Part shown: positions 26,375 to 57,427 of the stretch, piece by piece | Numbering within the stretch: position 1 is the first letter of the stretch | How the letters are laid out: every line of letters starts with the position of its first letter | NCBI GenBank assembly: GCA_004431415.1 | Contig: QPMI01000026.1 | Coordinates: 62,001 to 126,000, forward strand | Length of the DNA: 64,000 nucleotides | From: Cyanophora paradoxa CCMP329 | Lineage: Eukaryota > Plantae > Glaucophyta | Direction: 5' to 3' | Notes under the pieces: generated by a model | Database searches by the model: none | Seen by the model: only the letters and a program-made list of their open reading frames with translations | Told to the model about the DNA's origin: nothing | Made by a program: the position numbers and the translations under genes

Positions 26375-27041
26375 TCAAATTCGAATTCGAGCCGCCCATC
26401 CCTTCCCTTTCGAATTCATGTCCTTCGGCCGCCGGTCTAGCCGTATGCCTCGCCTCACAAGGGTCCCGCCGGCCCTGCGGAGCACCGGCGCGGGTGTGTC
26501 TGCTTGAAGCTTGCAACGAGGGTTCGGATCCGGGGCGACCGATATCGCCATCCCTCGCCCCTTGGCGCCGCGACGGTTAAGCATGGGGCGCCCCGCCGCC
26601 TGTGATCGCATGTCAGCTTTTCTCAGCTGCAGATTTAGATCTAGACGTTGGCACCGAGCTCGGGGCTGTGAGCGAGAGAGCATACGAGTGCGCGTCGTCG
26701 GCAAATGCGGGTTCGATGGGCGGGCAGCACAGCACAGGCCGGGCAGGCACATACGTACGCGATCCGCATATAGCTGCCGCTGGGAGCTTCAAGCCTCCTC
26801 TTGGGGCCGAGGCGATCATCCTTGAAGAGGAGTTGGAGCTGGACGCGAAGAAGCAAGCGGCAGATTTAGACGGCAGGCAGCGCGATTGGCATGCGTGCGT
26901 GCAGGTCACTGATACCGCTGAAGAGGTCAGTACTACTTTTGCTATTGATCGGCTCCGGTTCTGGGCCATGCTCACCTCTGTGCATCACGTGAATACGTGC
27001 GGCCCTCGCGCAGCAGAGCGGGAGGGGCGACTCTCTTCAGA

Positions 27042-28427: not shown

Positions 28428-30257
28428 CTAGCTAGGCGTCACTTTGGCTCGATATTTTTCTAGTCGGCTCGCTCTCATTGGGTGTGTATGAATGATTAGT
28501 ATACATGAGTGTGATCCCCACCGCGCTAAGCTCGTCTCCCGATCCCAGCTGGGAGGCAGATCGGTGATTATGAAAGCTGCCAGCGGGCTGGCAGGTACCA
28601 GTTCATGATCATTCGCAGCAGCGCGCTCGAACTCGGTGACGCCGAGGGCGTCTGCGGCGAACTGCGCCGAGGGCGTCGGCGGGTGGGCTCGCTGCAGCGG
28701 GCGGCGGGCGTGGCGGACCTGGCGCGTGAGCATGAGCTCGAACTCCGTGACGGCGGGGTCGGTGGGGCGGAAGCAGGGGAAGCGCTCGATGCCGAGGTAG
28801 GCGGCCAGCGCCTCGGGGGAGGGGAAGAGGAGCCACGCCGCGTCCCGCGCCCCGCCCCGCTCCGCCGTGTGCCGGTGCGAGTCGAACACCAGCAACTGCC
28901 CCGCCGCCGTTGCGAGGGGCCGGACGCGAGGCGGGGGGGCGGGCGAACCGTGCAGGGGAGGGCGGCGAGGGGCGGGGGGCGCCAGCGGCGCGGGTGGGCG
29001 CGGTACGCGTCGCGGACGGCTTGGGCGAGCTCGTGGCGGGGCGGCCCGGGCAGCGCGAGGGCGACGAGGGTCTGGCTCGCGCACGTGACGGCGAGGCCCT
29101 CGGGCCGGCGCCGGCCCGCCTCCCACAGCTCCCGCGCCGGCCCCTCGAACGCCCGCCCGTCCGGCTGCTCGCCGGTCGGCCGGGGCAGCGGCGCGGCGGC
29201 GGGGGGCGGACCGCGAGGGCGCCGTCGACGCGGACGGCGACGCGGAGGGGGCGGAGGTCGGGCGCGGCGCCGGCGACGGCGTCGAATTCGGTGTGCTCGA
29301 CGCCCGCCGGCGCCGCGCCGCCCGCCCTCGCCATGTAGTGCTCGTACAGCAGCGTCCCCTCCCGCAGCACCTGCCGCCGCCGGTCGGGCGGCGCGGCGGC
29401 GGGTGGCGCGGCGGCGGGCGCAGGGCGGACCCTGTCGACGGCCTCCGGGTCCCAGTAGGGCGCGTCGCCCCGCATCACCTGCAGCGCCGCCAGCGCCGCG
29501 ATCGCCGTGCACGCGCTCCGCCCACCGACGCCCTTCGAGCCCTGGTGCTTGTTCCCAACCACGCGCGCCACTGCGGCGCGGCGCGGGCGCTCAGCGGCAG
29601 CCGGACCCGCGGCGCGCGGCTCGCCCTTTCGCCGCACGGCGCCGCGGCGCACCGTACGCTGGATGTACTTCTGCAAAAGGAAGGACGTTCATCGCTCCGT
29701 CCGCCGTCGTGCCCATGGAAGGCTGCGCGCCGTGAGAAGTGAGAATGCGGATCCGCAGAGCGAGCGAACAGCGCAGTCCGCCGGCCGCGAACCGAGACCA
29801 GTCATCTTCAGTCTCGAAGATCATGCTGTAGTCTTCCTGCTGCACAGCAGGCACGTCTACGAGCAGCCTCCATTCCCCGCTGTCGGCATCCTTGTGCATA
29901 GGCATGTGAACGTCCTGTGTGCAAGTGTCAACTAGGGACGTGTGAAGCGGTTGAACTCACAATCGAAGGCATGAACGCCGTAGCGCTGATCGCGCGGTCG
30001 CCCGGCAGGCGGAGCTCGGCCGTCCCAGAGCGCGACACATCGAAACTCGGAGAACCAGCGCTGCGCGCCTTCGCGAAGAAGAACTCCCGCAAAGTTCCCG
30101 CGTCGAAGCCCAAAGAGACATCCACAGGCATCGCCTGCAGGTACCCGCCGTCCGCTGCTGCTGCAGTGCTGCAGGGCGATTCTGAACTGATGGATCGGTG
30201 CGCACGGCTCCCGATTTCTGCTGGGGAACTCGGAAATTTGTGTTGCGGGAGCTTCAT
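28428..30257 (-). CDS. CBM48/AMPK-beta-like domain + viral-tegument-like deubiquitinase (VTD, peptidase C76-like), copy 1, 3'-truncated
   Basis: The CBM-like part reads PMHKDADSGEWRLLVDVP..DYSMIF..DW..DGAMNVL. The DUB part reads GNKHQG..GGRSACTAIA (Cys 29509-29511), VDR/VLREGTLLY, LLVFDSH (28875-28883) and FPSPEALAAYL. Confidence 0.72.
28654..30141. repeat. Arm 1 of a ~1.5-kb inverted duplication (partner 38990-40477)
   Basis: Near-identical reverse complement of 38990-40477, introns included. Confidence 0.95.
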
Positions 30258-30443
30258 CGGGAAGGCATGCGCACTGCTTTAGCGGCTGGCAGCCTGCCTA
30301 GTCGAATTGATTGCCCAGTAGTCGAACTTAACGTGTACCCAAGCTCGCGCAGCCTGAGCCAGCCTCCTCCAGCCTCCAGCCTCCAGCCTCCAGCCTCCTC
30401 CTTCAAAGCCTCGCAGTCGTTAATATCGTTCATCCCTCGCCAC

Positions 30444-32853
30444 ATGGCGAGGGACAAGATATGCATCTGGTGCGGTTCCCCGGACTGGAGCGGACACGTC
30501 GAATACTGCAAAGGTCTGCACACAGAGAACATTGCTTCAGATTCTCATCGTTCAAATCCAATTCCTCCTCATCATCGTCCGTAGCACGATTGCAAGCGGG
30601 AAGATCGCTGAGCCTGGCGAGCACCTCAGCGGCAGCTGCTGCGCAATCCGCCCCAACGTATGCGCAAGTAGCAGCGCCAGCGTCACGCACTCCAAGCTCC
30701 GACTCGAGCTCCAGTAGGAGCGGTGACCGGGAGAAGGCTTCGATCGGGGACGCAATCGTAGCAGCCGGCAAGCACTTCTTGCACGCAGTCGGCTCGGCAA
30801 TCGGAGGTTCGAGCTCGAGCAAGCAGAAGGGCCGGGCAGAGGGCGCGATGGCGGACGTGCCACTGGCTCCGCGCTGTTATGACTTCGCCAACTCGCGCCT
30901 CACCTTCCGCACCTTCACCATCACCTACAGGGACGAGGACGACCGGCGCGAGCCCGTCGCCGTCTCTGTGCGCGGCACCTTTGGCCACGAGGCCACGGTG
31001 AGCGCGCAGGGAATGTCCTCCGCCCCCCATTGTCTGACGGTCGCGCAGTGGTCGCAGGACATCGAACTCGCGGCCGTGCCGAGCGAGCAGGGCGTGCTTT
31101 GGCAGCTGCGGATAGATCTCCCGCCGCGCCGCGTTGAATTCCGATTCCGCGTCACTTACGAGCGCGGCCGTGAGCCGGAGTGGCGCACCTCGGTGCGCGT
31201 TGAGGCTTGGGCGAGGCTGTGGGCCACCGGTGACGCCAACGCGCAGGCGGCGCACCCCTGCGAGGGGCAGCACCGGAACAACTTTCTCTCCGCCGGGTAC
31301 TCCTCCAAACAGAGGAGGCCAATTCCCAGTGCGTTGCGACCTGACCCCCCTTACCCGACCTGACCCTACCTGACCTCGCAACCGCCCCCCCCCCCCCCCC
31401 CCCCCCCCCCCTCCTCCCGCGCACACCCCGCAGCCTCCATCGGAAAGGCCAACGACGCGGTCGACGCGACGTGGAGCATCGTCGCTTGCATGTTCGCCGC
31501 CTCGCGGCTGCATGGCGGCGAGCGCGCCTCCTCGCTCCACGAGCTGGCCGGCGCCCTAAGCGCGGTGCGCCTTTCATATCAACTCGGGAGACGCTCGCGC
31601 CGATGGATATGCGGTGCCGCAGGCGATACGGGAGGCGGAGAGGGCGGGGCAGGACAGGAGGGTCGAGAGCGCCGTCAACGCCCTCCTTGCTGCGGAGGCG
31701 GAGCCGGCCGAGTTCCTGCGCGCCGTCCCGCCCCTCGCCAGCCTCACCGCTGGCGAGTCCGCCGTCGACATCCTCGAGCGCTCGGTGCGCCAACTCCTGC
31801 GAGACCGCCGCTTGCAACCCCGCTTATGTGTCCCCGCAGCTGTGCCCGCTGGGGCTGGACAACCTCGCTGCGGCACTTGGCGGTGCAGCGGCCGGCCCTC
31901 TGCGGACGCTGCTCGTCGGCTTCGCGCTGCACCACGTGCTCGTTGTCTGGGGCGGCCCCGTGCCGGCGGGGCGGTTGGTGCTCTTGGACCCGGTGCCCCG
32001 CGGCGACGAGATCGGCCCGTCGGGCGAGCGGGAGGAGTCGCGCCGCGCCGCCGCCCTCGAGTTCGACGGCACCCAGGCAGTGCGGGCGTACCTCAGCCGT
32101 GAACTCTTCGGCGGGCGTGCCGAGCAGCAGGACGCACAGGACGACCGCAACTCTCTTGCGCGCTTCTGCGAGCTACGCCCCAAGGCCCCGGCTTCCACCC
32201 CCTCCGGCTCGCCAGCGGTCGGCGGGGCGTTGCTGGACGGGGGTGGGGACGCGATGGAAGTTGTGCGCCACCGGCTCGACGCGGAGCAGCGGATCGCCCA
32301 GGAGCGGCGGCGCCAGGAGGAGGATGAGCGGCGGATGGCACTGGAGCGGGACGAGGCGGCCCGGCAGCTGGCGGCACGGGAGGCGCAGCGGCGGGCGGAG
32401 CAGGAGGAGGCGGCGCGGCAGCAGGCGGCCCGCGAGGCGCAGCGGCGCGCCGACGCGGAGGCGGCCGAGCGGGAGGAGGCGCAGCGGCTCGCGGAGGAGG
32501 CGCGCAGGCGGGCAGAGGAGGAGGCGGAGCTCGAGGCCCTCCGGGAGCTGCAGCAGCAGCAGGAGCGGCTGGAGGCTGAGGTCGCGCAACTGCGGCGCGA
32601 GTACGAGGAGCGCAAGGCGCACAACGATCAGCAGCAGGGGGAGCTCGAGAGCGCGCGGCTGGCCCTCCGCACCCAGAAGACGTGAGCTTAGAACCCGGTC
32701 ACCACCTTATCGGCTTCTAGTACTGATACCGTGCTGCTCAGGTGTTCGACAGAACTTCACAGCCAGAAGCGCGGGGCAGTGTACGCCACTCAGCAAATCC
32801 TGGACAGGCTACACGACCGGCTGCAGGGGGCCCTCGCTCTAGATCTTGGTTAA
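30444..32853 (+). CDS. Cys/His finger + CBM48 + catalytically degenerate VTD-like domain + coiled coil
   Basis: N-terminal CIWC..HVEYC. The CBM48 reads VSVRGTF...W..WQLRIDLPP..EFRFRV..W..NNFL. The VTD-like part reads WSIVACMFAA/AIREA..LVLLDPV..AALEFDGTQAVRAYL. An E/R/A/Q-rich helix follows, with TAA at 32851-32853. Confidence 0.65.
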
Positions 32854-33278
32854 TCATTGAACAATAAACATCCTCAGCGCTCTCGGTGCCCCTACGCCCC
32901 TTGGCCTAGCTATAGACCCCTACTCGTCCCCCTAAGCACGTGCATACGTATACGTATACGTACCCCCCGGAGGACATACGTACGCTTGTACCCCTCGACG
33001 TCGACGTCGACTTGTGGGGTGCTTGCAATTGCGCCGTGGAGTGTCCTCCTCTGCGTACGGCTTCCATGGCCAGGCTGAAGATCTAGAGGCCTGGGCGGAA
33101 GCCCGGGCCGGCCGCGGTGTTCTGAATTCGAACGAGGGGGTCGACGTCAAACCGGTACCCCCCGGTACCGGAGCACACACACGCGTACGCTAGCGCTTGC
33201 AATTGCACACACACGTGCACGCTAGACCTTTAGATCGATATCTGCAGCTTGGAACAGCCTGCGGAGCTCGAGACGCCC

Positions 33279-34981
33279 ATGGCGGCACGAGATGAACGCG
33301 ATACGGGCGAGCGCCCGTCAAGCAGGAGCCACCGAGACGCCGAGGTGGACGACCTTGACGGACCAGGCGAGTCATTCTGGGAAGGCGTGCCGCCACGGCG
33401 TCCGACTCGTGAGTGGACCGATCCGCCACTCGCATCAAGCTCGTCCAGCTCAGCGAATCCTGCTCGGAGTCGGGGTGTTCCGCGGCGCGAACAGTCCGAC
33501 GAAGACGAGGGTCATGCGTACGAGGTCAACCGGCGCCTCGATGATCTGGAGCGCCGGCACAAGAAGCTGGAGCGCCAGATGAAGGCGGAGCTACTTCACA
33601 TCTCGCAAGAGTTGCAACAGGAACGCGAGGCAAGGGAGCAGGCGGAGGAGAGGGCGCGGTCGCAGGCCCGCGACTTCGAGAACCAGCTGCGGCGCCTGAC
33701 TGACCAGCGCCGCCGCTTCCTGGAGGATGTCCGCGGCGACCTGCAGGTGTGCGCGTCCTAGCTGTAGGGCCTGCAACGCCGCATCCGTCTCTTGACTTTC
33801 GCACGGAATAGCGCAGGCTGCAGGAATCCGAAGAGCGCGCAGAGCTGCTCCAACAGCAGATAGACCGAATGAACGTGCAGGGGACGGCGCAGCCGCCGCA
33901 TGCGCAGTTGCAAGCGCGCTTCCCGGCAAACATCCAGGTTCGGGCCAGGCTCCGCCGCTGCGCCGCGACTTCTGACTTGTCGATCAGACGAACGAGCCGT
34001 ACGCGCCTCTGGGGGCCGGACTGGTCGCCGCTCCGAACCTCGGGCCAGGGCCTTTTGCGGTTGCAGCGCCAGCGGCCGCGGCTGCACTCGTTCAGAACCC
34101 AGCGACGGCGGCACCGCCCGTCCCCCCGGCCCGTCAACCTGCGCCGGCGCCCGCCCAGGCGCCGGCTCCCCAGCCGCGTGTCCAGCAGCGGACCATCGGC
34201 AGCGGCGATATTCGCTGCCTGATCGATGACTGCCCGCATCGTACGTCTAGGAAATCTGTCTGACTCGTTCGCTGGCGGCTATCTGACCAGTTATCAGGTT
34301 TTGAGGACGAGGAAATGCGCAACCACCACATCGCGTTCAACCACGACGACGGCGGCTGTACGTGCGAGACCTGCAGCGGCGGCGCCCCCGCCCCCGCCGC
34401 GAACCGGGCCCCCGCCCCCGCCCCTCGGCCGGCCCCGGCCGCGGCTCCGGCGCCTGCAGTCGCTGGGCCGTCCCGTGCGGGAAACCAGCAGGCGCCTGGG
34501 CCGGCTGCTGCGGCGCCGGCTGCTGCGGCGCCGGCTGTGGCCAACGAGCCGATGCAGCTCTTCTTCCGCTGCGCCGGCGGCGGCGACAACCCGCGGCTGC
34601 CGGTGGCGTGCACGCGAAACGAGCGACTGGTCGACGTCCTCGAGCGCGCCCGCGCCGCCCTCAACGCCGAAGAGCTCACCTCGGTGCGCTGTGCGGGCTC
34701 AGAGCTTGGCGCGCTCCGCTGACCGCGCCCGTCGACCCCGCGTGCAGCAAAACATCCGCCTGGTCTTCGTTGTGAGCGGGCCGAACAAGGTCGCGCAGCC
34801 GCCCATCGCGCAGCGGATGCAGCAGAGCCCGCTGGCGACCCTGGGCGAGTGCGGGGTCCCCAGCGGCGCTGAAATCTACGTGTCTGTCAAGGTGCCAGCT
34901 TCCCCGCCTCGCGCGCCCGCTTCCTTCGCTCGCGCACTCACTTTCGCTCAGATAATCGGACAAGCGGTCGCCAAGGATTAG
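33279..34981 (+). CDS. Coiled-coil, Cys/His finger and C-terminal ubiquitin-like domain protein
   Basis: Coiled coil at ~33520-33750, then CLIDDC..NHHIAFNH..CTCETC. The UBL-like part reads MQLFFRC..RLVDVLERARAAL../NIRLVF..TLGECGVPSGAEIYVSVK. Confidence 0.6.
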
Positions 34982-35646
34982 AATTGATTCGGATTAATTT
35001 ATAACTTCGATTAACTTACTGGGGGGGAGGGGGGAGGGGGATCGGGGGAGGGGATCCCGGAGGGGGGGGGGGGGGGGGGAAGGGGGGCGGGGAGTGGGAG
35101 GGCGGGGGGGGGGGAGGAGGGGGGGGGTGGCCGGGGGGGATGGGGGGGATATATATGAAGGGGGAGGGGGATTCTTATCCATCTACCCACGGGCCCCTTC
35201 TTCTTTAGCACGGCCCTCCGGGCCTGTACCCCCTGCATATATACGTAGCCAGTCCTGCGACCATCTTGCCATGCTTAGCATAGCCTATAACTATAGCTAC
35301 AGCTATAGCTTGCGCTAGCACTCAGCCGTTTGAACTGTACTCATATGCATGCAAGCCAGGGCCTCTGGACCAGCTGCCAGGCTGCAGGAAATAGATGGAA
35401 TGGATCTACTGACTGCAGCTGGCTCAGCCTGGCTGCATATCCTTAGTAATGTCTGTGATGACGGTTTACGTTCGAGACTTGCAAAGCCGGCCGCGTCGGC
35501 GGCATGGCTGCCGCCCGTCGCGTACGTCCCGGCGTGGGAAAGTTTGGTGTAGGGGGATTGATGTGAGAGAAGCCGGGGGAGGTGGGGGCTGGGGCGAGGG
35601 AAGGGGCCGCCGGGACGGCCATGCTGATGGCTTCGCCGTCCCCCCG

Positions 35647-38574
35647 CTACTGCATGAGTTCGGCCTCGACGAACATAGGGTGGGTGGGCGTAAAGTGGTG
35701 GCTGTGGTGCTGGCACGCCGCGCTCTGTACCCCCCTGGAAGCCCGGCACTCCTCCGAGTGCTCCGGCAGGAACGTCCTCTGGCGGCGGTGTCGAAGATTG
35801 CACAAAAAAGAATCAGTCACGAAAAAGAAGACGAACCCGGCAGTCCGCGTAGTAACAGAATTCCTGCCCACACTGACCCGCAGGAAAGTCAAGACGCTGC
35901 GAGTAATGTACAAATGATAGCTAAAGATGCGGACCCGGCAGCGCATGTGGCGGCAGCCGCGAGCCAGCTGCACGTACGCGGTGCAGCGAGGGCAGCGGGG
36001 CCAGCCCTTCTGCCGAGCCAGTTCTGTCATCGCTCTGTCCTCGGGACTCCGCTCGTCCTCCGGAAGGGCCTGGTACTGCAAGCGGATCCGAAGAAAAGAA
36101 ATAGTCAGCCAGGACGTATAAAGTCGCTGGAACAATAGCGAAAAATAGCTACCTGCTCGCAGGTGATTTCCTGGTGCCAGGGCGCGCGGCAGACAGCGCA
36201 GTAGCGCTTCCGGCAGCCGAAACATTCGACGTTCTCGCCTGCCGTCGGATCCCACTCGCAAATCATGTCGCACGATGGATAGGGGCAGTCGCTTCGTCGC
36301 TCTACGAAATTTCCCCGCGATTTGACGCAAGGTCAGCGGACAGTAGCTTGTCAAACTTTGAAGGCTCGCACCAGGGGGAATGTGAGTGAGGGTCAGGTTG
36401 CGCATGAAGATCTGGAGGTCCTTGTCCCGAAGCCCGACCAGCATCGCGAGGTTCTCGCCCAGCTCCCCCTCGAAGAGCGTCGGGCACCTCGAGCCTCCGG
36501 GGCACCTGATGGGGTACAGCGTCGGGTCCTTGAACCGCGAGTCGATGTAGCCCCGCAGGCAGTTGCGGCAGGTGTAGTGCTCGCAAGTCCCCGCCGTGCC
36601 GAGGCAGTCCATCTGAGGTGTCGGCGCGGCTTCAGCGCTCGAGCTAGAAGAGGTTTGAGAAGCTTAGGGGCGTCGACGCACGGAAACCTTGATGCGCTCG
36701 CCGAGGCAGACGCAGCACTGCGCGAGGCTTTCGTCGAGCTCCTGCTGCACGGCGTGCAGACGAGCCTGGTCGTGATGAATGGACCGGAGGGGAGGAGGGG
36801 GGGAGGAGAGGGGGGGGGGGGGGGTGTCAGCTGCGATCTCGGTCCAGCTTTGGGATTTCGGCGGATTCAAACCTCGAGCGCGTCGATGCGGTCCTGCGCC
36901 TGCTCCGTGGCGCCTTCGACGCCGCGGATGCGGCCAACGTCCCTGAACACGCGTTCTGCGCGGTGAAGTGGTGGGGATGAGGTGGTGGGGGAAAGGAGGG
37001 GTAGAAACAAAGATCTAGAGCGAGCTGACCGATGCGGTTGAGGAGTTCCGCTTCGGCGTGCTCCCACAACGACCCGTCGCGATCGTCGCCGGCTTCGCGG
37101 TACACCTGCTCCGCAGGAGATGTCAAACACGCGAAGAAATGAATGTCAGAGGATCGAACCCGCTGCCATTCCGACTCGACGTCGGCTGTGGCGTCCTCGA
37201 TCCGATTGATGAGCTCGTCCACCTCAAGATTTTACACGAGTCAGCCGGTATACATCCGGAGACAGATCTAGATTCATAGAGGGGAGAATACCCGTGCGGC
37301 GGCCTCCGCGGCGGCGTGAGCAGCCTCGCTGGCCTCTGCCTGCAGGTTGAGCAGCTCTGCAGAGGGGCCGCCGTTGTGAGAGGGGGTAGCTAGGAGGCGG
37401 GGGCCGGGGCCGGGGGACGTGCCTTGGGTTGCTGCGCGGGCGCGGGCCTCGGCATCCTGCGCGCGCCGTCGGAAGGCCTCTTCGGCGTGGCGCGCGGTCT
37501 GCTGAGCCCTCTGCACGGCCAGGTCAGCTTGCCGCTCCCGGTGAGCTGCAAGCCGCTTTGCTTCATCTTCGCTTCTCTTTAGCCTCGCAATCTCCTCCCG
37601 CAGTTCGCGCTCCAGCCTCTCCGCGTTCCGAGCAGCCTGTGCGACGTCTTTTATACTGCGTTTCGATCGCAAGTGCAGGGCCACGCGTGCACCTTTTCGG
37701 AACGGTCCTCTTCTCTCTGAGCCCGATTTTTTTGACTGCTGAGACTTGCTTCCAAACGGTCGCAATCCTCTTCAAGCTGCGAAGGGAAAGCAAGCGCTTG
37801 CAGTCATGATCATATGCATGTGATCGATTATGCGATTATAGGGAGCGGTTGCAAACGAACTTTGGAAATCTTCTTGTCTTTCTGCACCAGCTGCGCCCTA
37901 AGACTCATCACCAGGTCTTCCTTGTCAGCGAGCGCCTGCCGCAGTGCGGACTGCTTCGATTCGGGTCAGATTCGACTACTCAGGATAGGGTGGAGACTGG
38001 GACTGACATCCCGCGTCCTTACGATCGCGACGTCACGCTTGAGCGCCTCCAGCTCACGCCCAGAAGCTATGACGGTGAAGAAGCTGTCATTCATTGTAAT
38101 GAAACTTGCAAGTCTAATAGACTACGTACCTATGAGCCTGTCTTTCAGTTCTGCATGCGCGGATCGTTGCACATCAGCGACACGCGCGCAGAATTGAACG
38201 TTCGCATGCAAACCTTGTGCGGCCGTCCGCCATTTGCGATAGGCAACGCGCATCTTGGCGCAGGATTCTAATCCGCATAGTTCTCCATCCACGACCGCTG
38301 CGCACGCATGATGATCGGACACGCGAGCGCTGCCTTTGAACAGCAGAAACTGCTCACAGTAGAAACTGTCGGAGCGTGAAGGGCCAGCGAGACGATCTCG
38401 GTCCGTGCTCTCGTCTAGATCTGCAGCTGCAGATGAAACGGGTCGCCCGGGCGGCGACTGGCCGCCCAGTCCTGCATCAATATCGATATCCTGCCCGCGC
38501 TGCGGTGTAGCAATAGTCTCCGGCACGCTCGCGGCCGCGCCCGGCTCGCGGTCCTCGTCTGGGGGATCCATCAT
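35647..38574 (-). CDS. RBR (RING1-IBR-RING2) E3 ubiquitin ligase 1 with N-terminal coiled coil
   Basis: RING1: CCVC..CEHYTCRNCLRGYI..PIRCP..RC. IBR: CPYPSC..VECFGC..YCAVC..WHQEITC. RING2: CPRC..GCRHMRC/CGQEFC, with catalytic Cys and His intact. The join to the 5' exons at 37.3-38.6 kb is inferred. Confidence 0.85.
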
Positions 38575-38690
38575 GCAACGCGTCCTAACCTGCGTGCCGC
38601 GAACTTCAGCCAGAGGATGCCAGAGGATGGATCGAGCTACCTTCGAATATGGCTCACCCGCGCCACGGTCAATGGCAAATGCCGGTCTCT

Positions 38691-38746
38691 CGAGTAACTG
38701 CCGCTCACTCGAGTAACTGCCGCTCCCTCCAGTAACTGCCGCTCAG
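38691..38746. repeat. Three tandem copies of AGTAACTGCCGCTC (~19-bp period)
   Basis: Directly visible between RBR1 and DUB copy 2. Confidence 0.8.
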
Positions 38747-38989
38747 CGGCTCGGCCAAATGACGATCGCGGACCCGCCAGGCGTATCCGCATTCACTTGA
38801 CCGCGCGGCTTAGGCGGCTTATGATCAGGGGCTACATGATTCGAATACCGACTCGTCACTTGGTCGACGTCCGCGGCAGCTGAGCTGAGCGCTTCCTTGA
38901 GGTTACGAGTTCCGGATCCCCAGCACAACTCGGAACCCGCGCGCACCGATCCACCAGTCAGGTCGGCCCTGCAGCAGCGGGCGGCGGTT

Positions 38990-40477
38990 CCTGCAGGCGA
39001 TGCCTGTGGATGTCTCTTTGGGCTTCGACGCGGGAACTTTGCGGGAGTTCTTCTTCGCGAAGGCGCGCAGCGCTGGTTCTCCGAGTTTCGATGTGTCGCG
39101 CTCTGGGACGGCCGAGCTCCGCCTGCCGGGCGACCGCGCGATCAGCGCTACGGCGTTCATGCCTTCGATTGTGAGTTCAACCGCTTCACACGTCCCTAGT
39201 TGACACTTGCACACAGGACGTTCACATGCCTATGCACAAGGATGCCGACAGCGGGGAATGGAGGCTGCTCGTAGACGTGCCTGCTGTACAGCAGGAAGAC
39301 TACAGCATGATCTTTGAGACTGAAGCTGACTGGCTGGTCTCGGTTCGCGGCCGGCGGACTGCGCTGTTCGCCCGCTCTCCGCATTCTCCTCACGACGCGC
39401 AGCCTTCCATGGACACGACGGCGGACGGAGCGATGAACGTCCTTCCTTTTGCAGAAGTGCATCCAGCGTACGGTGCGCCGCGGCGCCGTGCGGCGAAAGG
39501 GCGAGCCGCGCGCCGCGCGTCCGGCTGCCGCTGAGCGCCCGCGCCGCGCCGCAGTGGCGCGCGTGGTGGGGAGCAAGCACCAGGGCTCGAAGGGCGTCGG
39601 CGGGCGGAGCGCGTGCACGGCGATCGCGGCGCTGGCGGCGCTGCAGGTGATGCGGGGCGACGCGCCCTACTGGGACCCGGAGGCCGTCGACAGGGTCCGC
39701 CCCGCGCCCGCCGCCGCGCCGCCCGCCGCCGCGCCGCCCGACCGGCGGCGGCAGGTGCTGCGGGAGGGGACGCTGCTGTACGAGCACTACATGGCGAGGG
39801 CGGGCGGCGCGGCGCCGGCGGGCGTCGAGCACACCGAATTCGACGCCGTCGCCGGCGCCGCGCCCGACCTCCGCCCCTCCGCGTCGCCGCCCGCGCCGAC
39901 GGCGCCCTCACGGTCCGCTCGCCGCCGCCGCCGCGCCGCCGCCCCGGCCGACGGGCGTGCAGCCGGACGGGCGGGCGTTCGAGGGGCCGGCGCGGGAGCT
40001 GTGGGAGGCGGGCCAGCGCCGGCCCGAGGGCCTCGCCGTCACGTGCGCGAGCCAGACCCTCGTCGCCCTCGCGCTGCCCGGGCCGCCCCGCCCCGAGCTC
40101 GCCCAAGCCGTCCGCGACGCGTACCGCGCCCACCCGCGCCGCTGGCGCCCCCCGCCCCTCGCCGCCCTCCCCTGCACGGTCCGCCCGCCCCCCCCGCCTC
40201 GCGCCGGGCCCCTCGCGACGGCGGCGGGGCAGCTGCTGGTGTTCGACTCGCACCGGCACACGGCGGAGCGGGGCGGGGCGCGGGACGCGGCGTGGCTCCT
40301 CTTCCCCTCCCCCGAGGCGCTGGCGGCCTACCTCGGCCTCGAGCGCTTCCCCTGCTTCCGCCCCACCGACCCCGCCGTCACCGAGTTCGAGCTCATGCTC
40401 ACGCGCCAGGTCCGCCACCCCCGCCGCCCGCTGCAGCGAGCCCACCCGCCGCCGACGCCCTCGGCGCAGTTCGCCGC
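38990..40477. repeat. Arm 2 of the inverted duplication
   Basis: Reverse complement of 28654-30141. Confidence 0.95.
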
Positions 40478-40940
40478 CTTCAGGTTCCACCTGGAGGAGA
40501 TTGCGGCAGCACTGCCCTCGCCTCCTCCCGCCGAGCGGACGCCGTCGCGGCAGACGTCCGCAGAGCGCCAGGCACGGATCGCCTCGCTGCGCAAGCAAGT
40601 GCAAGACCTGGTCCGCCGCAGCTCTGCATCCGCGCGGAAACGGAGCCCTGACCCCGGAGCAGGAGGCGGAGCGGGGCGAGCTGGAGAGGGTCCGGGCAGA
40701 GGAGGAGCGGCGGGCGGCGCAACTCGCGCGGGACGCGGAGGACCTGAGGGGCGAGCAGCGTCGCGCGGAGAACGCGTGCGTCCCCGGACCGCCGGCCCGT
40801 GTACCCCGCAGGCCTGACCCCGGGGGCGCCCTCAGGCCCTGCCCGGAGTGCGAGGCGCTGGACAAGAAGCTCGCGGGGTTTCAGGCGAGCATCGACGAGA
40901 TCACCGCGAGCAGGCTGCGGGTCCCGGCTGGGCGCACGGT
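39000..40940 (+). CDS. CBM48-like + VTD deubiquitinase, copy 2, with C-terminal coiled coil
   Basis: Same motifs as copy 1 (Cys 39614-39616, DSH 40245-40253). It continues FAAFRFHLEE..RIASLRKQVQDL/EQEAERGELERVRAEEERR../CPECEALDKKL and then runs into a C-rich tract. Both ends are uncertain. Confidence 0.72.
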
Positions 40941-41499
40941 GCGCTGCGCCCTTTTCGTCGCGCTTCGTCAGCAACGTCCCCCCCCCCCCCCCCCCCCCCC
41001 TCTCGCCGACCGTCCTTACCCCGCCGCCCGTTCTCCCCCTCCGAACCCCCCGCCCTCCCCCCTCCCCTTCCCCCCCTGCCCTCCCCCCTCCCCCTCTCCC
41101 CCCTCCCCACCGCCCTTCTCGTAACCCCCACCATCCACTTAACTCCAGCCCCCTTTTCGCCCCAGCCCCCCAGCGCCCTCCTCGCCCGCCCCCTCCCCCC
41201 AAACCCTCTCCCGCACAGCCTCCCACTTACCCACGTTCTCCCACTTACATCGACCCCCTTCCCCTCTTTTCTTTCCGCTCCCCGACCCCCTCCCCTCTCC
41301 CGAACCCCTCCCAACAACCCGCCGGCCCACCAAATCTTACATAGCCACGCGCTCCCCCTCCCTCCCCCTCCTTCCAACCCCATCCCCCTTCTTCCGGCCC
41401 CGCCGCCCCCCCTCCCCCCCCACCCCCCCCGCCGGGCCCCTTCCCCCCCCCCCCCCCCTTTCATTTTTCGCTCCCTCCTCCGCTCACGAAGTCTTGCAG

Positions 41500-42420
41500 G
41501 CGTCGTCATCGAGGGCCGATCATCGAGAGGTAACAAACTCGTTTCAGGATGTTTGTTGGACATGCACTTACCAACCTGCAGCCGCGAGCGGGGGAATCTT
41601 CATCGGAGGGTCCTTCTGTCGCCCCTGCTTCGTCTTCCGTGCACATCCCTAGCGGCTTCACTCGCCGCCTCTTGCCAACACGGACCGCCGCAGGGTCAGA
41701 GCTCGACTTTAGAGGCGGCGGCTCCTGGGGGCTTGCCAAGCTTGCCCAGAACGGGGCCTTCGGATCCTACTTCGACGGCCCTTCCGGACCCTGGCGACTG
41801 CACGGTGCTCCTCAGACATCAGACCAGAGGCTGAAACATCTCATTGGACCGCAGACCTGGCGGGTCGAAAACTGCGCCCCGCCGGACCTGCGGGGGTACA
41901 CCTACGCGTCGCCGCGGCCTGATATGGGCGCTTCGGCGCCCACAGGCCGCCCGCCTTTGCCGCGCGAGGCGGTGCGCCGTGCTCAAGTGAGCCGGCCGGT
42001 CGCTTGCAGCACCCTCACCTCGCCCGGCCGCGGCGGCGCGCAGGGCGCGTCTGCTATGGAGATAGACGACGCGCGGCAGCCGACGCAGTCCGAGGAGGGT
42101 CTCGTGCAGCTGTGCCGCGAGTGCTCTCGGGGCCAGCGCCGGACAGAGCTCCTGCAGCTCGTCGACGTGGACGCGGCCGCCCCCGGCGCCAGCACCAGCG
42201 TCAATGACGACATCCACGTCGACGAAGGCGGTCTGCGGTGGCGGTGCGCGCGGGTCCCGCTCTTCTTCTGCAAGCGGCGTCTGAGGTCTGCCGCAGGCTC
42301 GCCTGGGATAACATGCTCTACGTTTCGGAGAAGCACCCCCTGCACCTGCGTCGCGTGTTCTGCAGACTCTGCAGAACTCAAGTTGCGGAACTTCTGGTGC
42401 GAATGAACGCTTACCCCTGA
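41500..42420 (+). CDS. Unknown exons, possibly the 3' part of DUB copy 2
   Basis: Open frames with short introns, ending LAWDNMLYVSEKHPLHLRRVFCRLCRTQVAELLVRMNAYP*, with CxxC pairs. Confidence 0.35.
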
Positions 42421-43797
42421 TAGCTATAGCTCCTCAAAAAACGTTTCGACGCAGGTTGTGGGTGGCGCAAACACCATCCGCCTCTCGCACGCCGCTCTGG
42501 TCGCGGACCCGCCGCAAGACTTGCAAGAGCCCCCGGGCCCGCAGCAGCCGCCCACGCAGTCTTCGAGTGGATCCGCTGCTGAGGTGGCGCCCGTTTGTTT
42601 TTGTAGCCTCCTGTAGAACCGAGGAACTGAATCAAATCGACAGGAGCGGCGCGCTGTTGTCGCCCCGTTGGCTAGCGATGAATCCTTGCGTCCTCCACGA
42701 CCCTCGCCTGCACGTGTGAGTGCCCGGAGCGCGATTTTGAGATTGCGTTCTCAAGATTGATCGCAGGATGCGGACGTCGACATGCAAAGCGACAACGCGG
42801 AACGGGGGACTTCTGCACTGCCCCGCAAGACTCTCTTCTGCGAACGATGCCCGGAGAAGGGCCACGAGACCGCTGTCCTGCAGGAAGTGCTCCAGGAGGA
42901 CGCTGTGCCGGCCGGCCGGAGGATGTTCCGCGACCGTGAGGGAAGGCGCTGGACGTGCGCTCCGGTCCTGCGCCGCCCGCGGCCGCACTCGCGGCCTCCT
43001 TGAAAGCTGATCGTGATTTTCGCCATTAGGGAGGTCAAACCTGACCCCAAGCTGGATAGATTCATCCAATGCCCGCAATGTTATCGTGTCTGTGCCAAGG
43101 TACGAAGGCCTCGTCATTCTTACGCCGCGGCGCAGCTGACGAGTTCCTGTAGGTCGACGTGGGGCTGGGGATAATCGAGCCATGGCGGAGCGACCAAGTA
43201 GAGCTTGCACACGTTGATGAGTTCTTGCGAAGATTCTAAGATGTAGATTTTCATGATCATGATCATGATCTCATGAACGTATGCATGCACATGCACCTGC
43301 ATGCGCAGGCCTGAGACTGCGGCCGCCGGGCAGCCTGGCAGCAGCTGCAGACAGCATGCGCAGCGCTATAGCTAGCGCTAGTTGTACGTATACGTCTACA
43401 TGCATATATAGACCGCGGGCCGGGCTCGCGCGTGACGGCATGCAGCAGTACCACGGGCCCCCGGGCTCCGGATCCGGGCCCCCGGGCCGGCTTCGGAATT
43501 CGAATTCCAAGCCCGGGGGCCCTCAGGGGCCTTGCTTTCCGAAGCTTATATAATTAAGCTTATAACTATATAATTACACTGTGACACCCGTGCTCGTGCG
43601 CTGCGGCACTGCAGCTGCAGCAGGAGCCGCAGAACTCATGATCATAATCGTGATCAGTGTACATTATTATAATCAAATCACTTTTCGTGGGAGGGGGGGG
43701 GGGGGGCGGGGGGGGGGCGGGAGGGGAGGGGGAGAGGGGGGGGCGGGAGGAGATGTGAAGGGGGGGGGGGGTGGGGGGAGGGGGCGTTGGAAGAGAG

Positions 43798-43829
<32 letters not shown>

Positions 43830-43831
<2 letters not shown>

Positions 43832-45813
43832 GTTCCAGAGAGGGCCAGCCACCAAGCTGGAACGGAAAGGGGCTCAGGACCACGTAGGGTGCCCGCAGGG
43901 AAAGGTGTGGTTCGGGGCAGGGCCTGGGGCTACAGTCAGGGTCGATCGCGAGAGCGATCGCGAGGGGCGGAGCAGCGGGAGCAGCACCGCCGCAGATCCA
44001 GCAGAGCTGGTACCCGCATTGGCAGGTGATGCAGTTACAGCCGCCGTTCTTCGTCACGCCGTGCCCGCAGCGGCCACAGACCTGCAGAAAAAAAGTCACG
44101 ACACAGAGAGAAGGGTTAACGGTTATCGCACCCTGCAGCTCTGACGAATCAAGGCCGCGGTTCTGCAGCGACGAGCTGGAATCAAAGAGCAGCTTTGACG
44201 GCGAACTTCGCAGAGTACAAAGGGGGCGCACGCGTCCTCGCCCTCCTTGCCGTTCTCGCGCTTCCACCGTTGGAACTGCTCGCAGTTCATGTCTGCGTGC
44301 CACTGCGGCGGCCGCTAAGCGCCAAGGCCGCTAGCCTCGCCAGCTCGGATCGGAGCAGCAGGCACCTGGCATTGGCATTGCTGGCACCAGGCGTAGCCGC
44401 ACTCGGGGAACGGGCAATGGATCATGGCGATGTTGGGGTCGATCTGCAGCATGCGGGTCAGGGGGGGTGTACACGACTCGCTTCGCTGGGCTCTTTCTTT
44501 CCACTCGCCTCGCAGAAGCCCTTGCACCCGGGGCGGCGGCACTGCCTGCGCGGGACTCGGCACCGCGCGGGAAAGGGGCGGGGGAGGTGGCGAAAGGGGG
44601 AGGGGGGGTACCAGGCGCGCTCCCCGACCAGCTCTCTGAACTTGTCGATGTTGATAGCGTGGACCGCCTCGGCCATTTCGCCCCCCGTCGCGTTCTGCGG
44701 GCGCGCGCGCGTGAGAGCGCGCAGGAGGAGGAGAGCGGCCGCGGGCTCGGCACCTCGAGATCGACCGTGCTCCAGCGGCCGGGGCAGCCGTCGGTGGAGG
44801 GGCACTGCGAGAGGGGAAGTCAGCGAGGCTCGACGGGCGTGGACAGGAGAAGGGGGGCGGAGGCGGGCGGAGCAGTGGAGGGGGGGGGGGGGGGGAGGTT
44901 CGGGAAAATGGCCCTATAGCTAGCCCCAAGCGCTCTGCACCTTCGGCTCGAGATGCCGCGCGCCTATTTCTGCCTTCGCGTATCTTTCGGCGCACTTCCA
45001 GTGGAACTGGTGGGCGCAGCAGCCCGCCTGCGGCGGCAGTGAGCGGCTGCGGGGAGAGAGGTCAGGCGCGCTCGCCTGGAACATCAGGTCCTCGGCGACG
45101 CGATCTGTACACATGGAACACTCCTGCACTTCGAACTGCTCCGCTGCGCCCGGGCATTGGGCATCGCTGCGCTACTGCGCCCAGGCGGCGAACCGCAGAT
45201 CCGGTCCGCCTCCACTTGTCGTTCGCGCTCCCGCTCGAGCCGCTGCGCCTCGCGGGCCGCCTGCTGCCGGGCCGCCTCCTCCTGCTCCGCCCGCCGCTGC
45301 GCCTCCCACGCCGCCTGCTGCCGGGCCGCCTCGTCGCGCTCCCGCGCCATCCGCTGCTCTTCTTGGTGGCGCCGGAGCGCTTCCTCCTGGCGCTGCTGGA
45401 TAAGCAGCCGCCGCTGCTCTTCGACCGCACGCTGATCTGCGCCTAGGCGATCAAAGGGCCGCGGTGTGCCCTGATCATGGGCCGCCCTCCGCCCGCCCAG
45501 CGCGCACCCCGCTGATCGCGCTGGGCGCGCTTGTGCTCCAGATCGATGCGGAGCTTTTCGATGCGCTCCTTTTCCTCCTGAACTCGCCGCCGCAGTCTGA
45601 AGAGCTCGCGAGTCGCGGGGTCGTCTGGGCGCCAGCGCAGCAGGTTCTCGCTGACGCCCAGCTCGAACACCATCTGAAGGTCCTCCAGCTGTCGCAGATT
45701 AAGCAAGTCCACTACAGCTGGAGGTTGGTTCTGCGGGCGCTCACCTGCCGCTCTTCAATGAGGGCCTTCAGGCGCTTCTCGTGTACAGAAGCATCTGGTG
45801 CGGCGTAGGACAT
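43830..45813 (-). CDS. RBR E3 ubiquitin ligase 2 with N-terminal coiled coil
   Basis: RING1: ECSMC..CAHQFHWKC..CPSTDGC. IBR: CRRPGC..HCPFPECGYAWCQQC..WHADMNC. RING2: CGRC..NGGCNCITCQCGYQLCWIC. The 3' end is lost in a poly-G tract, and extra 5' exons at ~46.0-46.3 kb are possible. Confidence 0.85.
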
Positions 45814-47298
45814 TACTGACAGGCAGATGCGGAACTGCCGATCCTGGCCGGGGCCGGGCTGCCTCGAAGTCCGGAGTGACTGTACCCCCAAAGTGAAGTC
45901 CGTGACTGTCCGTCGTAGTCCGAAGCGCCGAGGCGGCAAGGAGGCTCCCTTCCCCACTTCGAGAACGTGAGGCAGCGCGATCTCTCGCGATTTCTCACAT
46001 CAAGATCTGCTGGACAGCTTTCGAAGCGACTGCTACCGGTACTTGACAGTTCCCACAGTTCGCGGTGCTTGACCCACTTTTTCGCCAAGAGATGCTCATC
46101 TATCGGCTGACTGTGTGCGCGCGCCCACAGCCTTCAGCTGGGAACTCGCCCCGCTTGCTCTCCTTTCCCGCGGTCCGATCGCTTGCAGTCGCGCTTCGAC
46201 GATCATAGAGTCACGTTTCCTTGCTTCATGGATCTTGGAAAGGGGCGCTTGCCGCGATGCGACAGCCGGCACCGTCGCGCGGCTCGCTCGACCGACTGGC
46301 GCGGCGGGGGCGCCCGTCGGGCGCCGGCGGGGTTGGTGAAGTCTTTGGCAGTGCATTGATGCGTAATTCGGCAGGCTGGCACGACCTCGGCCGACCGACC
46401 CCCGCCCCGCGGCTCGCGTACCCCTCCCCGGACCCCGCCGACCCCACAGCTGGATTCCCCGGGGTCGAAAACCCCTGAATCAAGTTCAACGGGTCCGTGG
46501 GGCGAAGGTCGGTTCCTCCCCACAGCCCCCACCCCCCTTTCCCCCCCCCCCCCCCCCCCCCCTCCGCGCCGTTCTCTTTTTCCGGAGCTGCCTCGGCAAG
46601 GTGGTATCATGGGGAGGGGTGCGGTGGCGGCGCTGCGTTGCCATACGGCGCTAACTGCCTACTTGTCAATCAGGGAGGAGGGAAGACAGGATAGGATCCT
46701 TGTGCTGGGAGCTCGCGACGTTGACATGGCGGGCCCCCCAGCAGCGAGCTGCCTCGCTCGGGTGTGTGGCCCTTTTTCGGGTGTGGCCCAATGTCGTCGA
46801 GTCCTGCCGCCCCGCCCTTCAGGTTCCCGGCGCGTGAGCGACGGGAAGGCCCGCGTTCTTCTGCGCAGGGCCCGCCCCGCCTCAGCTACCTGCGGCGAGC
46901 GCTGCTCGGCCCGCCCGCGCCCGGCATCGCGTCGTCGCGATTGAATGTCGGTCCGCGAACCCCACTGGCCACCCTCGCCTGTACCCTGACACGAAAACAG
47001 GTTCGGAGGGGCCTGCAAGGGGCTCCGCGATCGCGAGCTGGTCCGCCCCGAGTCCGCCGCCGCGTGCCGGCCGGCCGACCGACTGATATCGATCATGAGC
47101 CGATTTGGCCCCGGCCCGCATCTGTACGGTCACAGACTGTACCCTTGAGCTTGTCAATATATTAATTGCAATTGGTTCATGCACAGTACATCATGAGCTT
47201 TCATAAACCATTAAACCATTCATCTCTCTGATACCAACTTATACTTAGACCTACATCCAAAAAAAGTGCTATGTGCTTGAAAATTCGGGAATTCGGGA

Positions 47299-49826
47299 TC
47301 AATTCTGATGGAACGTGTTACCGTTCACAACGCAGGCGCTGCCTGGCAGAACATTGACGCCGCCGCAGCTTGCATACAACGGGTTCGAGATGCGTTCGAG
47401 CATGTTCTCCTTCACAGTTCCCTTGCCTTGCTCTGCCACGCAGATCCCAAACCGCTGGTCGTGGATCCTGCGGGGAGCCGGCGCGGGGCTGACGTTAATG
47501 TTAGAGGAAGAGGCATGAAAGGGCCGCCAGGCACCGGTTGCCTTGTATGACGGGGTCCGCGCCGCCAACAGTGAGGAAGCCCAGCCCCACGTTGCCGTAA
47601 ATATCGTTGCCCTCCGCCATGCCACACGCCTGCCGTTCGAAGCGGAAGGCCACCCCGCCGCAGTCGTGTACTACGTTCCCTGCGCCGCGCAAATTGTCCG
47701 AGGTTGGTAACCGACGCAAAATGTCCTTATACACGGAGCAGAGCTGAAAGCCAATCACGCACGGCGCAGCGTCGGGGCTGTCCCCTCATCGCGGACGTAG
47801 ATGCCGATCGCCGAGCTGGAGACGTCGCAGTCCTCCACCACCGCCCGGCTTCTGGCGTGGATTTCTACAGCACACTTGTCCCCAATGCTACGGATCGTGA
47901 TGCCGCTCACGCTCGGCATTGCGGAGCCCGCGAAGGACAGAGTAGTTCCACGGCCCCATTCAAGGACGGCATCCCGCGACCCGACGATGCGCACATCCTT
48001 GGTGAGCAAAACCTGCTCCCGGTGCCTGCACCGAGCACAGGCGTTAGGAAGCGAGAACCAGACTATATCGCACAAGAGGCACGCACAAGCCCGGCGCGAG
48101 TCGGATCGTCTGACCTATGGCGGCAAGCCTCACAGCATTCATGATGCTCTCGCCTCGTTGCACCTGAACCTCCACAGCACTGTCTGCAGCTGTCTGCTTG
48201 CACCGCCACTAAGAATGGCCCAGCGATTATGCAGCATGTGGATTGACGCACGTCGGAGCTCGCGGCCACCTCTGCACAGAGCCGCATCGCTTCGAGTTGC
48301 GACGACAGGTCCTCCGCTTGCTGCTCCAGCGTGCCTGAGCCCGCGAACGCTCAGCAAATTGTGGCCGTCCCGGGCGCGTGGGCCGCACCCTTCTCGCGCG
48401 CGAACCGCGCCACGAGGTCGTCTCTCTCCTGGGAAAGGTCAGCATTCTTCTGAGCGAGGTCTGCCTTCTCTCCAGCAAGTTCGTCCTTCTCTCGTTGGGC
48501 CGCCGCCAGCTGCGTCTCGGCCGCCTCTGCATGGAGCCACATCACTTCGAGTTGCGACGACAGGTCCTCCGCTTGCTGCTCCAGCGTGCCTGAGCCCGCG
48601 AACGCTCAGCCAATTGTGGCCGTCCCGGGCGCGTGGGCCGCACCCTTCTCGCGCGCGAACCGCGCCACGAGGTCGTCTCTCTCCTGGGAAAGGTCAGCAT
48701 TCTTCTGAGCGAGGTCTGCCTTCTCTCCAGCAAGTTCGTCCTTCTCTCGTTGGGCCGCCGCCAGCCGCGTCTCGGCCGCCTCTGCACGGAGCCGCATCGC
48801 TTCGAGTTGCGACGACAGGTCCTCCGCTTGCTGCTCCAGCGTGCCTGAGCCCGCGAACGCTCAGCAAATTGTGGCCGTCCCGGGCGCGTGGGCCGCACCC
48901 TTCTCGCGCGCGAACCGCGCCACGAGGTCGTCTCTCTCCTGGGAAAGGTCAGCATTCTTCTGAGCGAGGTCTGCCTTCTCTCCAGCAAGTTCGTCCTTCT
49001 CTAGGGCAAGTCGCGCGAAGAGATCCCGCAGGCAGAGCCCTGTCCAAGGTCACGCGATCCGCGCGGTGGGCTCGGGGCAGAGAGCCGGGAAGTGCAGTAC
49101 CGAGGTGCGCCTCTCGATCCAAAATGGAGAGTTGTGCAGTGCAGCCGACATCAGCGTTGAGGCACGGTCGCTGGCACACTGCCTCGTGCGCCTGCACAGG
49201 ACGGGCCGGGGTGGGTCGAGGGAAGAGGCGCAGGGAGAGGCGAGAGCGCGCACCTCCAGCTCGACGATGCATACACGCGCCCCGCAGCAGCGGCAAACGC
49301 CCCACCCCTCCGGGCAGCGCTCCACGTGGGCCGCGAAGGTGCCCACATTGCCCCGCCACTTGCAGCCGCGCTCCAGGAACCGGCAGCTGCATTCGCGGCA
49401 TCAGAACGAGAGCGATCTGCTTGTAAATCTGCCCGAAAGACACGCACTGCACTCTCAGATCGCTGATTTGGCGGCTGACGAACGGCGCGGGCCGGAAGCG
49501 CTCGCGGTCAACGACCTCACGGTCGACGGGGCACCAAAGGCTCTCCTTCATGTACTCGTACTGAAAAGGGTAGCCCTTGCCTTCTGCCATCCTCTCCGCA
49601 CACGCCCGGCAGAGTGCGTGGTCGTTCGAACACCCAAGCAGCGTCTGAGCACGCGCAGCAATTGCAACGTCGAAACCAGCGAGCATGGCGGCCCAGGCCA
49701 ACAAGGGCGCACCGGCTCACGCATGACGAGTAAACAAATGGAGCATACGAGCTCGAGCCCGCTCGCCTTCGCCTCCTCGCCAGGCTCGAAGAACTCCGAT
49801 GGCCACCCGCCCTGCCCGATGGCCAT
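47299..49826 (-). CDS. RING + TRAF-type zinc fingers + repeated coiled coil + right-handed beta-helix (PbH1, FBXO11-like) protein
   Basis: RING: CSICLLVMREP..CSNDHALCRAC..CPVDR. TRAF-type fingers: LRVQC..GCKWRG..HVERCP, HEAVC and CLNADVGC..REAHL. Beta-helix: REQVLLTKDVRIVG, VVEDCDVSS, GNVVHDC..GNDIYGN..PVIQGNRIHD. Confidence 0.8.
48262..49002. repeat. Tandem 255-bp exon+intron repeat, ~2.9 copies
   Basis: TTCGAGTTGC occurs at 48291, 48546 and 48801. Each unit is a 201-nt exon (67 aa) plus a 54-nt GT-AG intron. Confidence 0.93.
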
Positions 49827-57000: not shown

Positions 57001-57427
57001 CCGGCCCCGCCGCCCCCGGCCCCGCCGCCCCGGCCCCGGCCGCCGCCCGCCGCCCGGCCCCTCGAGCGCCCTGTCCTCGGCCGTCCGTCCGCACCCCCCC
57101 CCCCCCCCCCCCCCCCCCGCCTCCACCCCCCTGCAAGGCCTATTAGGGTCGGTGCCTCTTGGGCCCGGGGCGCTGGGCCCCCCCTTCCCCTCCACTGCAT
57201 TCGTGCACTCCGATCCGGTTCCAAATGCAATGCGTGCATAATTAGCCCAAATGCTAAGCGCCGGGCCGGCGACTGGGCTGCAGACGTGGCCGAAGGGGCG
57301 AACGTTATCTTCCAATCTTGCTTAATCATGATATAATATTATAATTACTCAATCTAGCTATAGTCACCTCGAATTCTTCGTATTCTTCGCTTTTCGTTTG
57401 TCATCTTCCTTTTGACGCGTTCCTTGG

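Follow-up and report, generated by a model that had tools for sequence, protein, structure and literature searches.

The window analysed here, a stretch of 64,000 nt of contig QPMI01000026.1 from the glaucophyte Cyanophora paradoxa, contains an island of seven intron-rich genes at 28.4-49.8 kb, arranged as A(-), B(+), C(+), E(-), D(+), F(-), G(-) (Table 1). To judge from their predicted domains, most of the seven would be writers or erasers of ubiquitin, and a clustered, duplicating ubiquitin writer/eraser set with a CBM48-like domain is supported. The island begins at g6922 of the C. paradoxa contig tig00000123, a name that the genome paper also uses in its supplements (PMC6704402). EukProt models of C. 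paradoxa are identical to A (g6922, P0001), B (g6923, P0003) and F (g6927, P0011); by their numbering between these identified models, g6924 to g6926 would be genes C, E and D. According to the genome paper, g6928 has no database match (PMC6704402). The ~1.3 kb between F and G (45900-47250) contains no recognisable domain. Throughout the island, introns are short with GT-AG ends and the GC content equals that of the flanks, which indicates that the genes are ordinary host genes. Two pairs, A/B and E/D, are head-to-head. A, B, F and the paralogues described below were searched as whole database models, and C, D, E and G by single exons. Exon-wise Pfam and PDB searches missed the VTD and CBM48 domains because the exons are short.

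Genes A and D, together with the paralogue g7196 on a second contig, are predicted VTD-type deubiquitinases with a Cys/Asp-x-His triad, an assignment that was confirmed by profile comparison. The Asp-x-His motif defines the VTD family (PMC9741609). When an A-type profile (A and its paralogue) was searched against 1.84e9 proteins, the sole match that was neither self nor artefact was a protein with three VTD repeats (3xVTD; E 9e-5). P0005 and P0007, which also appeared in this search, were rejected as repeat artefacts. Pfam assigns the 3xVTD protein to Herpes_teg_N, and it matches PDB 8ADD, the structure of a zebrafish Helitron VTD, at 1e-11. A can be aligned end to end with this protein, and Q154, C165, D321 and H323 then fall in register; alignment of the A-type and VTD profiles by hhalign gave 75% (E 2.5e-5). 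A profile made from the 3xVTD repeats only gave A 13.5 bits, where shuffled sequences reached at most 1.7; this reverse search is a consistency check, because the 3xVTD protein had itself been chosen as the match. Direct Pfam searches of whole A-type models gave no VTD match.

The sequence-only reading took A and D for two CBM48-like/VTD deubiquitinases. The VTD half of that claim stands, and the CBM48 half does not: the N-terminal domain of A/D has no Pfam match to CBM48 and has lost the Trp and Lys positions for glucan binding. The A-type paralogue P0002 has Leu and Ile/Gly at the columns of W143 and R174 of gene B. Pairwise comparison of the E. coli GlgB CBM48 with the A/D N-domain was not significant (p about 0.05), and pairwise tests with the E. 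coli GlgB and GlgX CBM48 domains gave no significance. Towards its C-terminus, gene D encodes a pair of CxxC motifs (42100-42500, +), for which the exon-wise Pfam search gave nothing useful; we take their spacing to recall the zinc domains of Yippee, Mis18, cereblon and the RIG-I-CTD. A further Cys-rich segment of D is found at 42830-43100.

Gene B carries the CBM48-like domain of the island. Its N-domain matches AMPK1_CBM with 17 bits against a cut-off of 26.8 (E 0.007-0.01), the sole Pfam match among 24,736 models, and has no sequence match in the PDB. W143, R174, W187 and N201/N202 are kept in B and in its paralogue P0004, with 54% identity over the domain. The glycogen-binding residues of AMPK are W100, K126, W133 and N150 (PMC4032982); the B residues match this set in kind and order, in a register taken from the Pfam match. 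Downstream, in the region that corresponds to the protease, both B-type proteins have Trp at the column of the catalytic Cys and Val/Leu at the His position. This region gave no score with an independent VTD profile and was borderline by hhalign (P 0.03-0.05), and the sole support for its VTD origin is paralogy with the A type. The earlier description of B as a CBM48/pseudo-deubiquitinase is therefore borne out for the loss of the catalytic residues; its CBM48 score is below the cut-off, and the pseudo-deubiquitinase comes through paralogy only.

By sequence comparison, A/D and B belong to one family that split. The second contig, tig00001128, has one paralogue for each type: g7196 is 65% identical to A/D over the two domains, and g7184, 12 gene numbers away, is 50% identical to B. 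Proteins of the two types are colinear, and global alignment over the N-domain and the protease gave z 4.3 for g7196 against g7184 (0/600 shuffles) and z 3.7 for g7196 against B (1/600 shuffles); local and profile-profile tests of the two types were borderline. The losses appear complementary: the A type keeps the triad and loses the glucan-binding residues, whereas the B type keeps those residues and loses the catalytic Cys and His. Thus, no single protein combines an intact CBM with a deubiquitinase that is predicted to be active. Linkage of the two types is kept at two loci and is old, the paralogues being 50-65% identical.

No relatives of the CBM48-like/VTD architecture were found outside C. 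paradoxa, only distant VTDs; for B this negative is weak, because word-based searches reach close kin only, within a limited range of lengths. Among the viral, metagenome and prokaryote contigs that were scanned, one partial VTD turned up and no CBM relatives, and weak tblastn matches on plasmids were judged to be noise. In the literature searched, the CBM48-like/VTD fusion and the split into active and dead forms were not found; the individual parts are known. The 3xVTD gene is located on metagenome contig L002 (1731-8416) beside two protein-primed DNA polymerase B genes, which suggests that VTDs also ride Polinton/Maverick-like elements. The text of the VTD paper makes no mention of Polintons and names no alga (PMC9741609). 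Another VTD gene, with an intron, is present at 289-930 of the AT-rich metagenome contig L001.

The claim of two RBR E3 ligases was upheld: E and F are confirmed, from RING1-IBR-RING2 in order and a catalytic Cys in RING2, as predicted members of this class. F exceeds the Pfam cut-off for IBR (25.1-29.4 bits against 24.3), has RING and IBR_1 matches, and is assigned to PF01485/PF26200 in precomputed families. In E, the exon-wise searches gave IBR_1 at E 7e-5 and weak RING matches, with the full motif order. E has ~656 codons by splice coordinates, and the assembled g6925 transcript encodes 662 aa. The two ligases are distant, with 35% identity over the IBR only. A search for RBR paralogues returned F alone out of 161 candidates and is too insensitive for an RBR count. 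At 43986-44040 (-), two residues past its catalytic C348, F has a Cys (C350) instead of the canonical His, and a non-canonical base is possible. It continues with C360, C363, H370, C374 and H376 and ends in Ser; H376 is five residues before the C-terminal end. Neither ligase has a match to UBL or NZF domains, and neither bears a CBM. HOIL-1 has a binuclear zinc cluster of six Cys and a C-terminal His, and no canonical His at +2 (PMC9853177); by these features E and F are not HOIL-1-like.

The remaining two genes are less clear. The ubiquitin-like (UBL) protein claimed for C is unconfirmed, though not refuted, since neither exon of the intron-split domain, searched exon by exon, gave a profile or structure match. 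G may be a RING-TRAF gene with a right-handed beta-helix, although all of its matches are weak. The order of domains that had been claimed is right, with Sina_RING at E 0.04 and zf-TRAF_2 at E 0.045, both below cut-off; exon 49254-49385 was scanned and gave no match. The C-terminal exons match Beta_helix (E 0.007-0.06) and NosD (E 0.003), again below cut-off, and these matches stand in place of a MATH domain, which was not seen at the C-terminus. The beta-helix need not bind sugar, because in the E3 FBXO11 the CASH beta-helices recognise protein substrates (PMC8825234).

Three rearrangements proposed earlier for the island, an inverted duplication, a shared module and an exon amplification, are all present. 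A is an inverted copy of the first part of D, 95% identical over ~1.6 kb. Over 352 codons the two differ by 10 synonymous and 6 non-synonymous changes, and the ratio of non-synonymous to synonymous rates (dN/dS 0.21, p 0.002) shows that the pair is under purifying selection. The island was also said to be fast-evolving, which holds for gene structure and not for the duplicate pair. At the breakpoint of duplicate A (28625-28660), a short piece of an upstream exon has been copied again, as by template switching. A has a 4-nt deletion at the donor of exon 2, which may be a long-read error; the database model keeps the intron in frame. D has a 1-nt deletion in a run of C. Just past it, at 39878-39912 (+), D has three amino-acid-changing substitutions in ten codons, compared with six in 352 elsewhere, which may mean that the lesion is real or that the stretch is now spliced out. 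The module common to B and F is identical at 171/218 nt, including a 68-nt run with one mismatch (blastp E 3e-19), which points to a recent exchange of DNA between the two genes. The amplified unit in G is 255 bp, present 2.9 times at 97% identity.

Table 1. Features of the island and its flanks, in window positions
Feature	Position	Strand	Description
Gene A (g6922, P0001, 434 aa)	28432..30131	-	Degenerate CBM48-like N-domain and predicted VTD deubiquitinase; truncated, derived copy of D
VTD domain of A	28719..29571	-	Q154, C165 (29509-29511), D321 and H323 (28875-28883)
N-terminal beta-domain of A	29654..30131	-	Homologous to the CBM48-like domain of B; without equivalents of W143 and R174; no Pfam match
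Gene B (g6923, P0003, 632 aa)	30444..32853	+	Small Cys/His motif at the N-terminus, then CBM48-like domain, catalytically dead region like a VTD, and charged helix
AMPK-type CBM48-like domain of B	30899..31312	+	W143, R174, W187, N201/N202 invariant in paralogue P0004
Pseudo-VTD region of B	31436..32184	+	Trp at Cys site and Val at His site by alignment
Helical module in B	32285..32494	+	Ala/Arg/Glu/Gln-rich; common to RBR gene F
Gene C (inferred g6924)	33279..34981	+	Coiled coil, C2H2-like motif, Pro/Ala linker, C-terminal UBL-like domain by eye (34549-34891)
Gene E (inferred g6925)	35647..38574	-	Long helical N-terminus and RBR; RING1-IBR-RING2 ~35838-36720; catalytic Cys, His at +2
Gene D (inferred g6926)	39000..43210	+	Longer version of A, with N-domain, VTD (39555-40409), a helical stretch and Cys-rich zinc domains at the C-terminus
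1-nt deletion in C run of D	39870..39878	+	From A/D alignment
Gene F (g6927, P0011, 380 aa)	43874..45813	-	Charged helix and RBR E3; catalytic C348
Helical module copy in F	45193..45397	-	Common to gene B
Gene G	47299..49826	-	Candidate RING (49450-49750), TRAF/Sina-type zinc fingers (49096-49385), triplicated helical exon pair, beta-helix (47305-48018)
Tandem exon-intron amplification in G	48263..49002	.	255 bp x 2.9, 97%
Inverted duplication arm	28654-30235, partner 38910-40477	.	95% identical; coding dN/dS 0.21
TPR-like gene, directly left of island	26900-28163	+	Exon tested: no Pfam match
Large NACHT/AAA_16-TPR gene	57400-63500	-	NLR-like architecture; ~12 amplified TPR exons; TPR_12 E 3e-10; AAA_16 and NPHP3 weak

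As A, B and D are one family and E and F are distant RBRs, the island amounts to about four independent lineages. Assuming that 2-8% of the 25,831 genes belong to the ubiquitin system, a crude estimate gives 0.004-1 runs of four per genome by chance, or 0.2-13 runs of three if the UBL gene is discounted, and clustering above chance is not established. Linkage of the A and B types at two loci, the DNA that B and F appear to have exchanged, and the two head-to-head arrangements speak for a non-random association.

We tentatively favour a model in which the island is a Cyanophora-specific, rearranging cluster for protein-ubiquitin signalling, possibly with a glucan-anchored pseudoenzyme. Its core would be a domesticated VTD deubiquitinase, joined in an ancient fusion to a CBM48 domain of AMPK type and to a charged helix. 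The core gene would have duplicated and its functions split, with the protease triad kept in A/D and the glucan-binding residues in B, and the cluster would grow via local duplication and module exchange. A and D would trim ubiquitin chains off proteins, and E, F and G would ubiquitylate proteins. B would be a pseudoenzyme adaptor that docks on cytosolic alpha-glucan, as starch or in soluble form, where it would bind ubiquitin or partners; the glucan would be an anchor or cue, not the ubiquitylated substrate. The likeliest setting may be signalling in stress or in cell-autonomous defence, in line with other E3 sets that are lineage-specific and shuffled: plants are known to have tandem, lineage-specific RBR expansions (PMC2904391), and the TRAF-like E3 TrafE acts in amoebal immunity (PMC10181826).

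Several results weigh against this model. Structure prediction followed by a Foldseek search, a check proposed by the sequence-only reading, was run on the A type and on B, with no significant match. The AlphaFold models had a predicted local distance difference test (pLDDT) of 36 and 41, respectively, from shallow alignments (2 or 5 sequences). The A-type model found no informative match, and the all-beta model of B found many starch-binding sandwiches (CBM21, pullulanase, neopullulanase), all with E above 0.05. B scores below the CBM48 family cut-off, its paralogue P0004 has no CBM48 Pfam match, and the residue equivalence between B and AMPK is tentative. A is truncated, ending soon after the protease domain. 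The deletion in D (near 39874) lies past the catalytic Cys and puts Asp-x-His out of frame with it; the deletion may be a true lesion, a sign of alternative splicing or a long-read error. Just 6% of the residues in the helix shared by B and F are hydrophobic, which suggests a spacer rather than a dimerisation surface. No homologues were found in other glaucophytes, and the defence setting is drawn from analogy.

Some of these points would be expected if the island were a neutral duplication hot-spot, in which A, B and D would have arisen in tandem, the two RBRs would be unrelated, C and G would be neighbours by chance, and no pathway would be shared. This explanation is less probable and, on balance, unlikely. 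With about four lineages, up to about one such run per genome would arise by chance, and more without the UBL gene; the distance between E and F, the lesions in A and D, and the failure to find conservation outside C. paradoxa also fit. Against a hot-spot are the A- and B-type paralogues that are still linked on the second contig, the DNA recently exchanged between B and F, the purifying selection on A/D, and the two head-to-head pairs. A remnant of a transposon or endogenous virus with VTD and E3 genes as cargo is very improbable. VTDs do spread on Helitrons (PMC9741609), and the nearest non-self match adjoins two protein-primed polymerase B genes, but all island genes have host GC and many host-type introns. 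No polymerase, helicase, integrase or capsid gene was seen, tblastx of the polymerase B/3xVTD contig against the window was empty, and viral contigs gave no matches. A recent mobile-element insertion is largely refuted by these observations; the VTD domain itself was probably derived from a transposon or virus long ago.

Glaucophyte starch is cytosolic, a point in favour of a pathway for glucan ubiquitylation or starch quality control. Here B would bring one of the RBRs, F or E, to starch or polyglucan in the cytosol; that RBR would then esterify ubiquitin, for autophagy, to glucan or granule proteins, and the mark would be erased by A/D. Such a pathway is plausible, given that in mammals glycogen is ubiquitylated in vivo (PMC13345935). 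The CBM48-like domain of B with its binding residues and the helical module common to B and F are in its favour, as is the lack of the canonical +2 His in F, which is shared with HOIL-1 (PMC9853177). Yet neither RBR bears a CBM, F lacks the six-Cys cluster and the C-terminal His, the active deubiquitinases lack the CBM tryptophan, the B/F helix is spacer-like, and the beta-helix of G is generic; a core starch pathway would also be expected to be conserved. We consider this pathway improbable. About as doubtful, if not slightly more so, is a broader glucan-directed module, in which the CBM48 pseudo-deubiquitinase, docked on cytosolic starch or on the glycogen of an invader, would recruit an RBR for the esterification of ubiquitin to glucan or granule proteins, and the active VTD paralogue would be a dedicated eraser. 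If true, it would be a non-animal, independently evolved, gene-cluster counterpart of HOIL-1/OTULIN and laforin-malin. A module that senses glycans and writes and erases ubiquitin had been inferred from the sequence. The part that stands is a CBM48-like domain within a ubiquitin gene set. The further step to glucan sensing with ubiquitin written and erased on the glucan is unsupported, because the intact-looking CBM is on the dead paralogue and the active deubiquitinases have a degenerate N-domain, and because the RBRs have neither a CBM nor the six-Cys cluster and the beta-helix is generic.

Laforin consists of CBM20 and a phosphatase, and malin of RING and NHL domains. As in that pair, a CBM-bearing protein could bring an E3 to glucan; here, however, it would be a CBM48-like domain with a dead VTD, and the ligases would be of RBR and RING-TRAF type. 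Plant PTST proteins have a non-catalytic CBM48 and a helical region, and serve as glucan-docking adaptors. The AMPK-beta CBM is a glucan-docking adaptor of the same make-up (PMC4032982), and adaptors of these two kinds would be the best analogue of gene B. B differs in its dead protease fold, its charged, weakly hydrophobic helix and its score below the family cut-off. With the described VTDs, A-type proteins share the N-terminal Gln-Cys motif and Asp-x-His and are colinear with the Helitron type; inactive paralogues are also known there, in insects (PMC9741609). The differences are the CBM48-like N-domain, an insertion of 30 residues ahead of the strand with Asp-x-His, the pairing of active with dead paralogues, and the glaucophyte host, none of which is mentioned in the text of that paper (PMC9741609). 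HOIL-1/LUBAC with OTULIN likewise combines an RBR with a deubiquitinase and has a possible link to alpha-glucan (PMC9016349, PMC9853177, PMC13345935), and F, like HOIL-1, lacks the His at +2. Unlike that system, E and F have no UBL or NZF, binuclear six-Cys cluster or C-terminal His, and no HOIP- or SHARPIN-like partner. Protist TRAF-like E3s such as Dictyostelium TrafE have RING, TRAF-type zinc fingers, a helix and a C-terminal recognition domain, as G may have (PMC10181826), although G would have a beta-helix where TRAFs have MATH. FBXO11-type E3s contain a beta-helix, but G lacks their F-box (PMC8825234).

The CBM48-like/VTD proteins would extend VTDs to Archaeplastida. Glycogen ubiquitylation was first shown in vivo in 2026 (PMC13345935), and a family of deubiquitinases that targets carbohydrates was not found in the literature searched. 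The cluster proteins are thus cheap and concrete candidates, outside animals, for ubiquitin at or on starch. Should the ordinary reading alone hold, with a lineage-specific expansion of E3s and deubiquitinases, the significance would be modest.

The island had been described as lying between housekeeping blocks, which is true in part. A TPR-like gene adjoins it on the left and a NACHT/AAA-TPR gene follows ~8 kb further right, so the flanks are not purely housekeeping. One late TPR exon of the latter gene has an in-frame stop (~57818-57820) where the others have Glu. Further to the left, at 20268-20835 (-), is a divergent gene that resembles histone H3 by eye; a centromeric H3 is possible. Finally, the segment at 3387-6557 has similar ends (76% over 83 nt) that enclose tandem arrays of 161 bp x 4.1 and 40 bp x 11, and is possibly a non-autonomous transposon.

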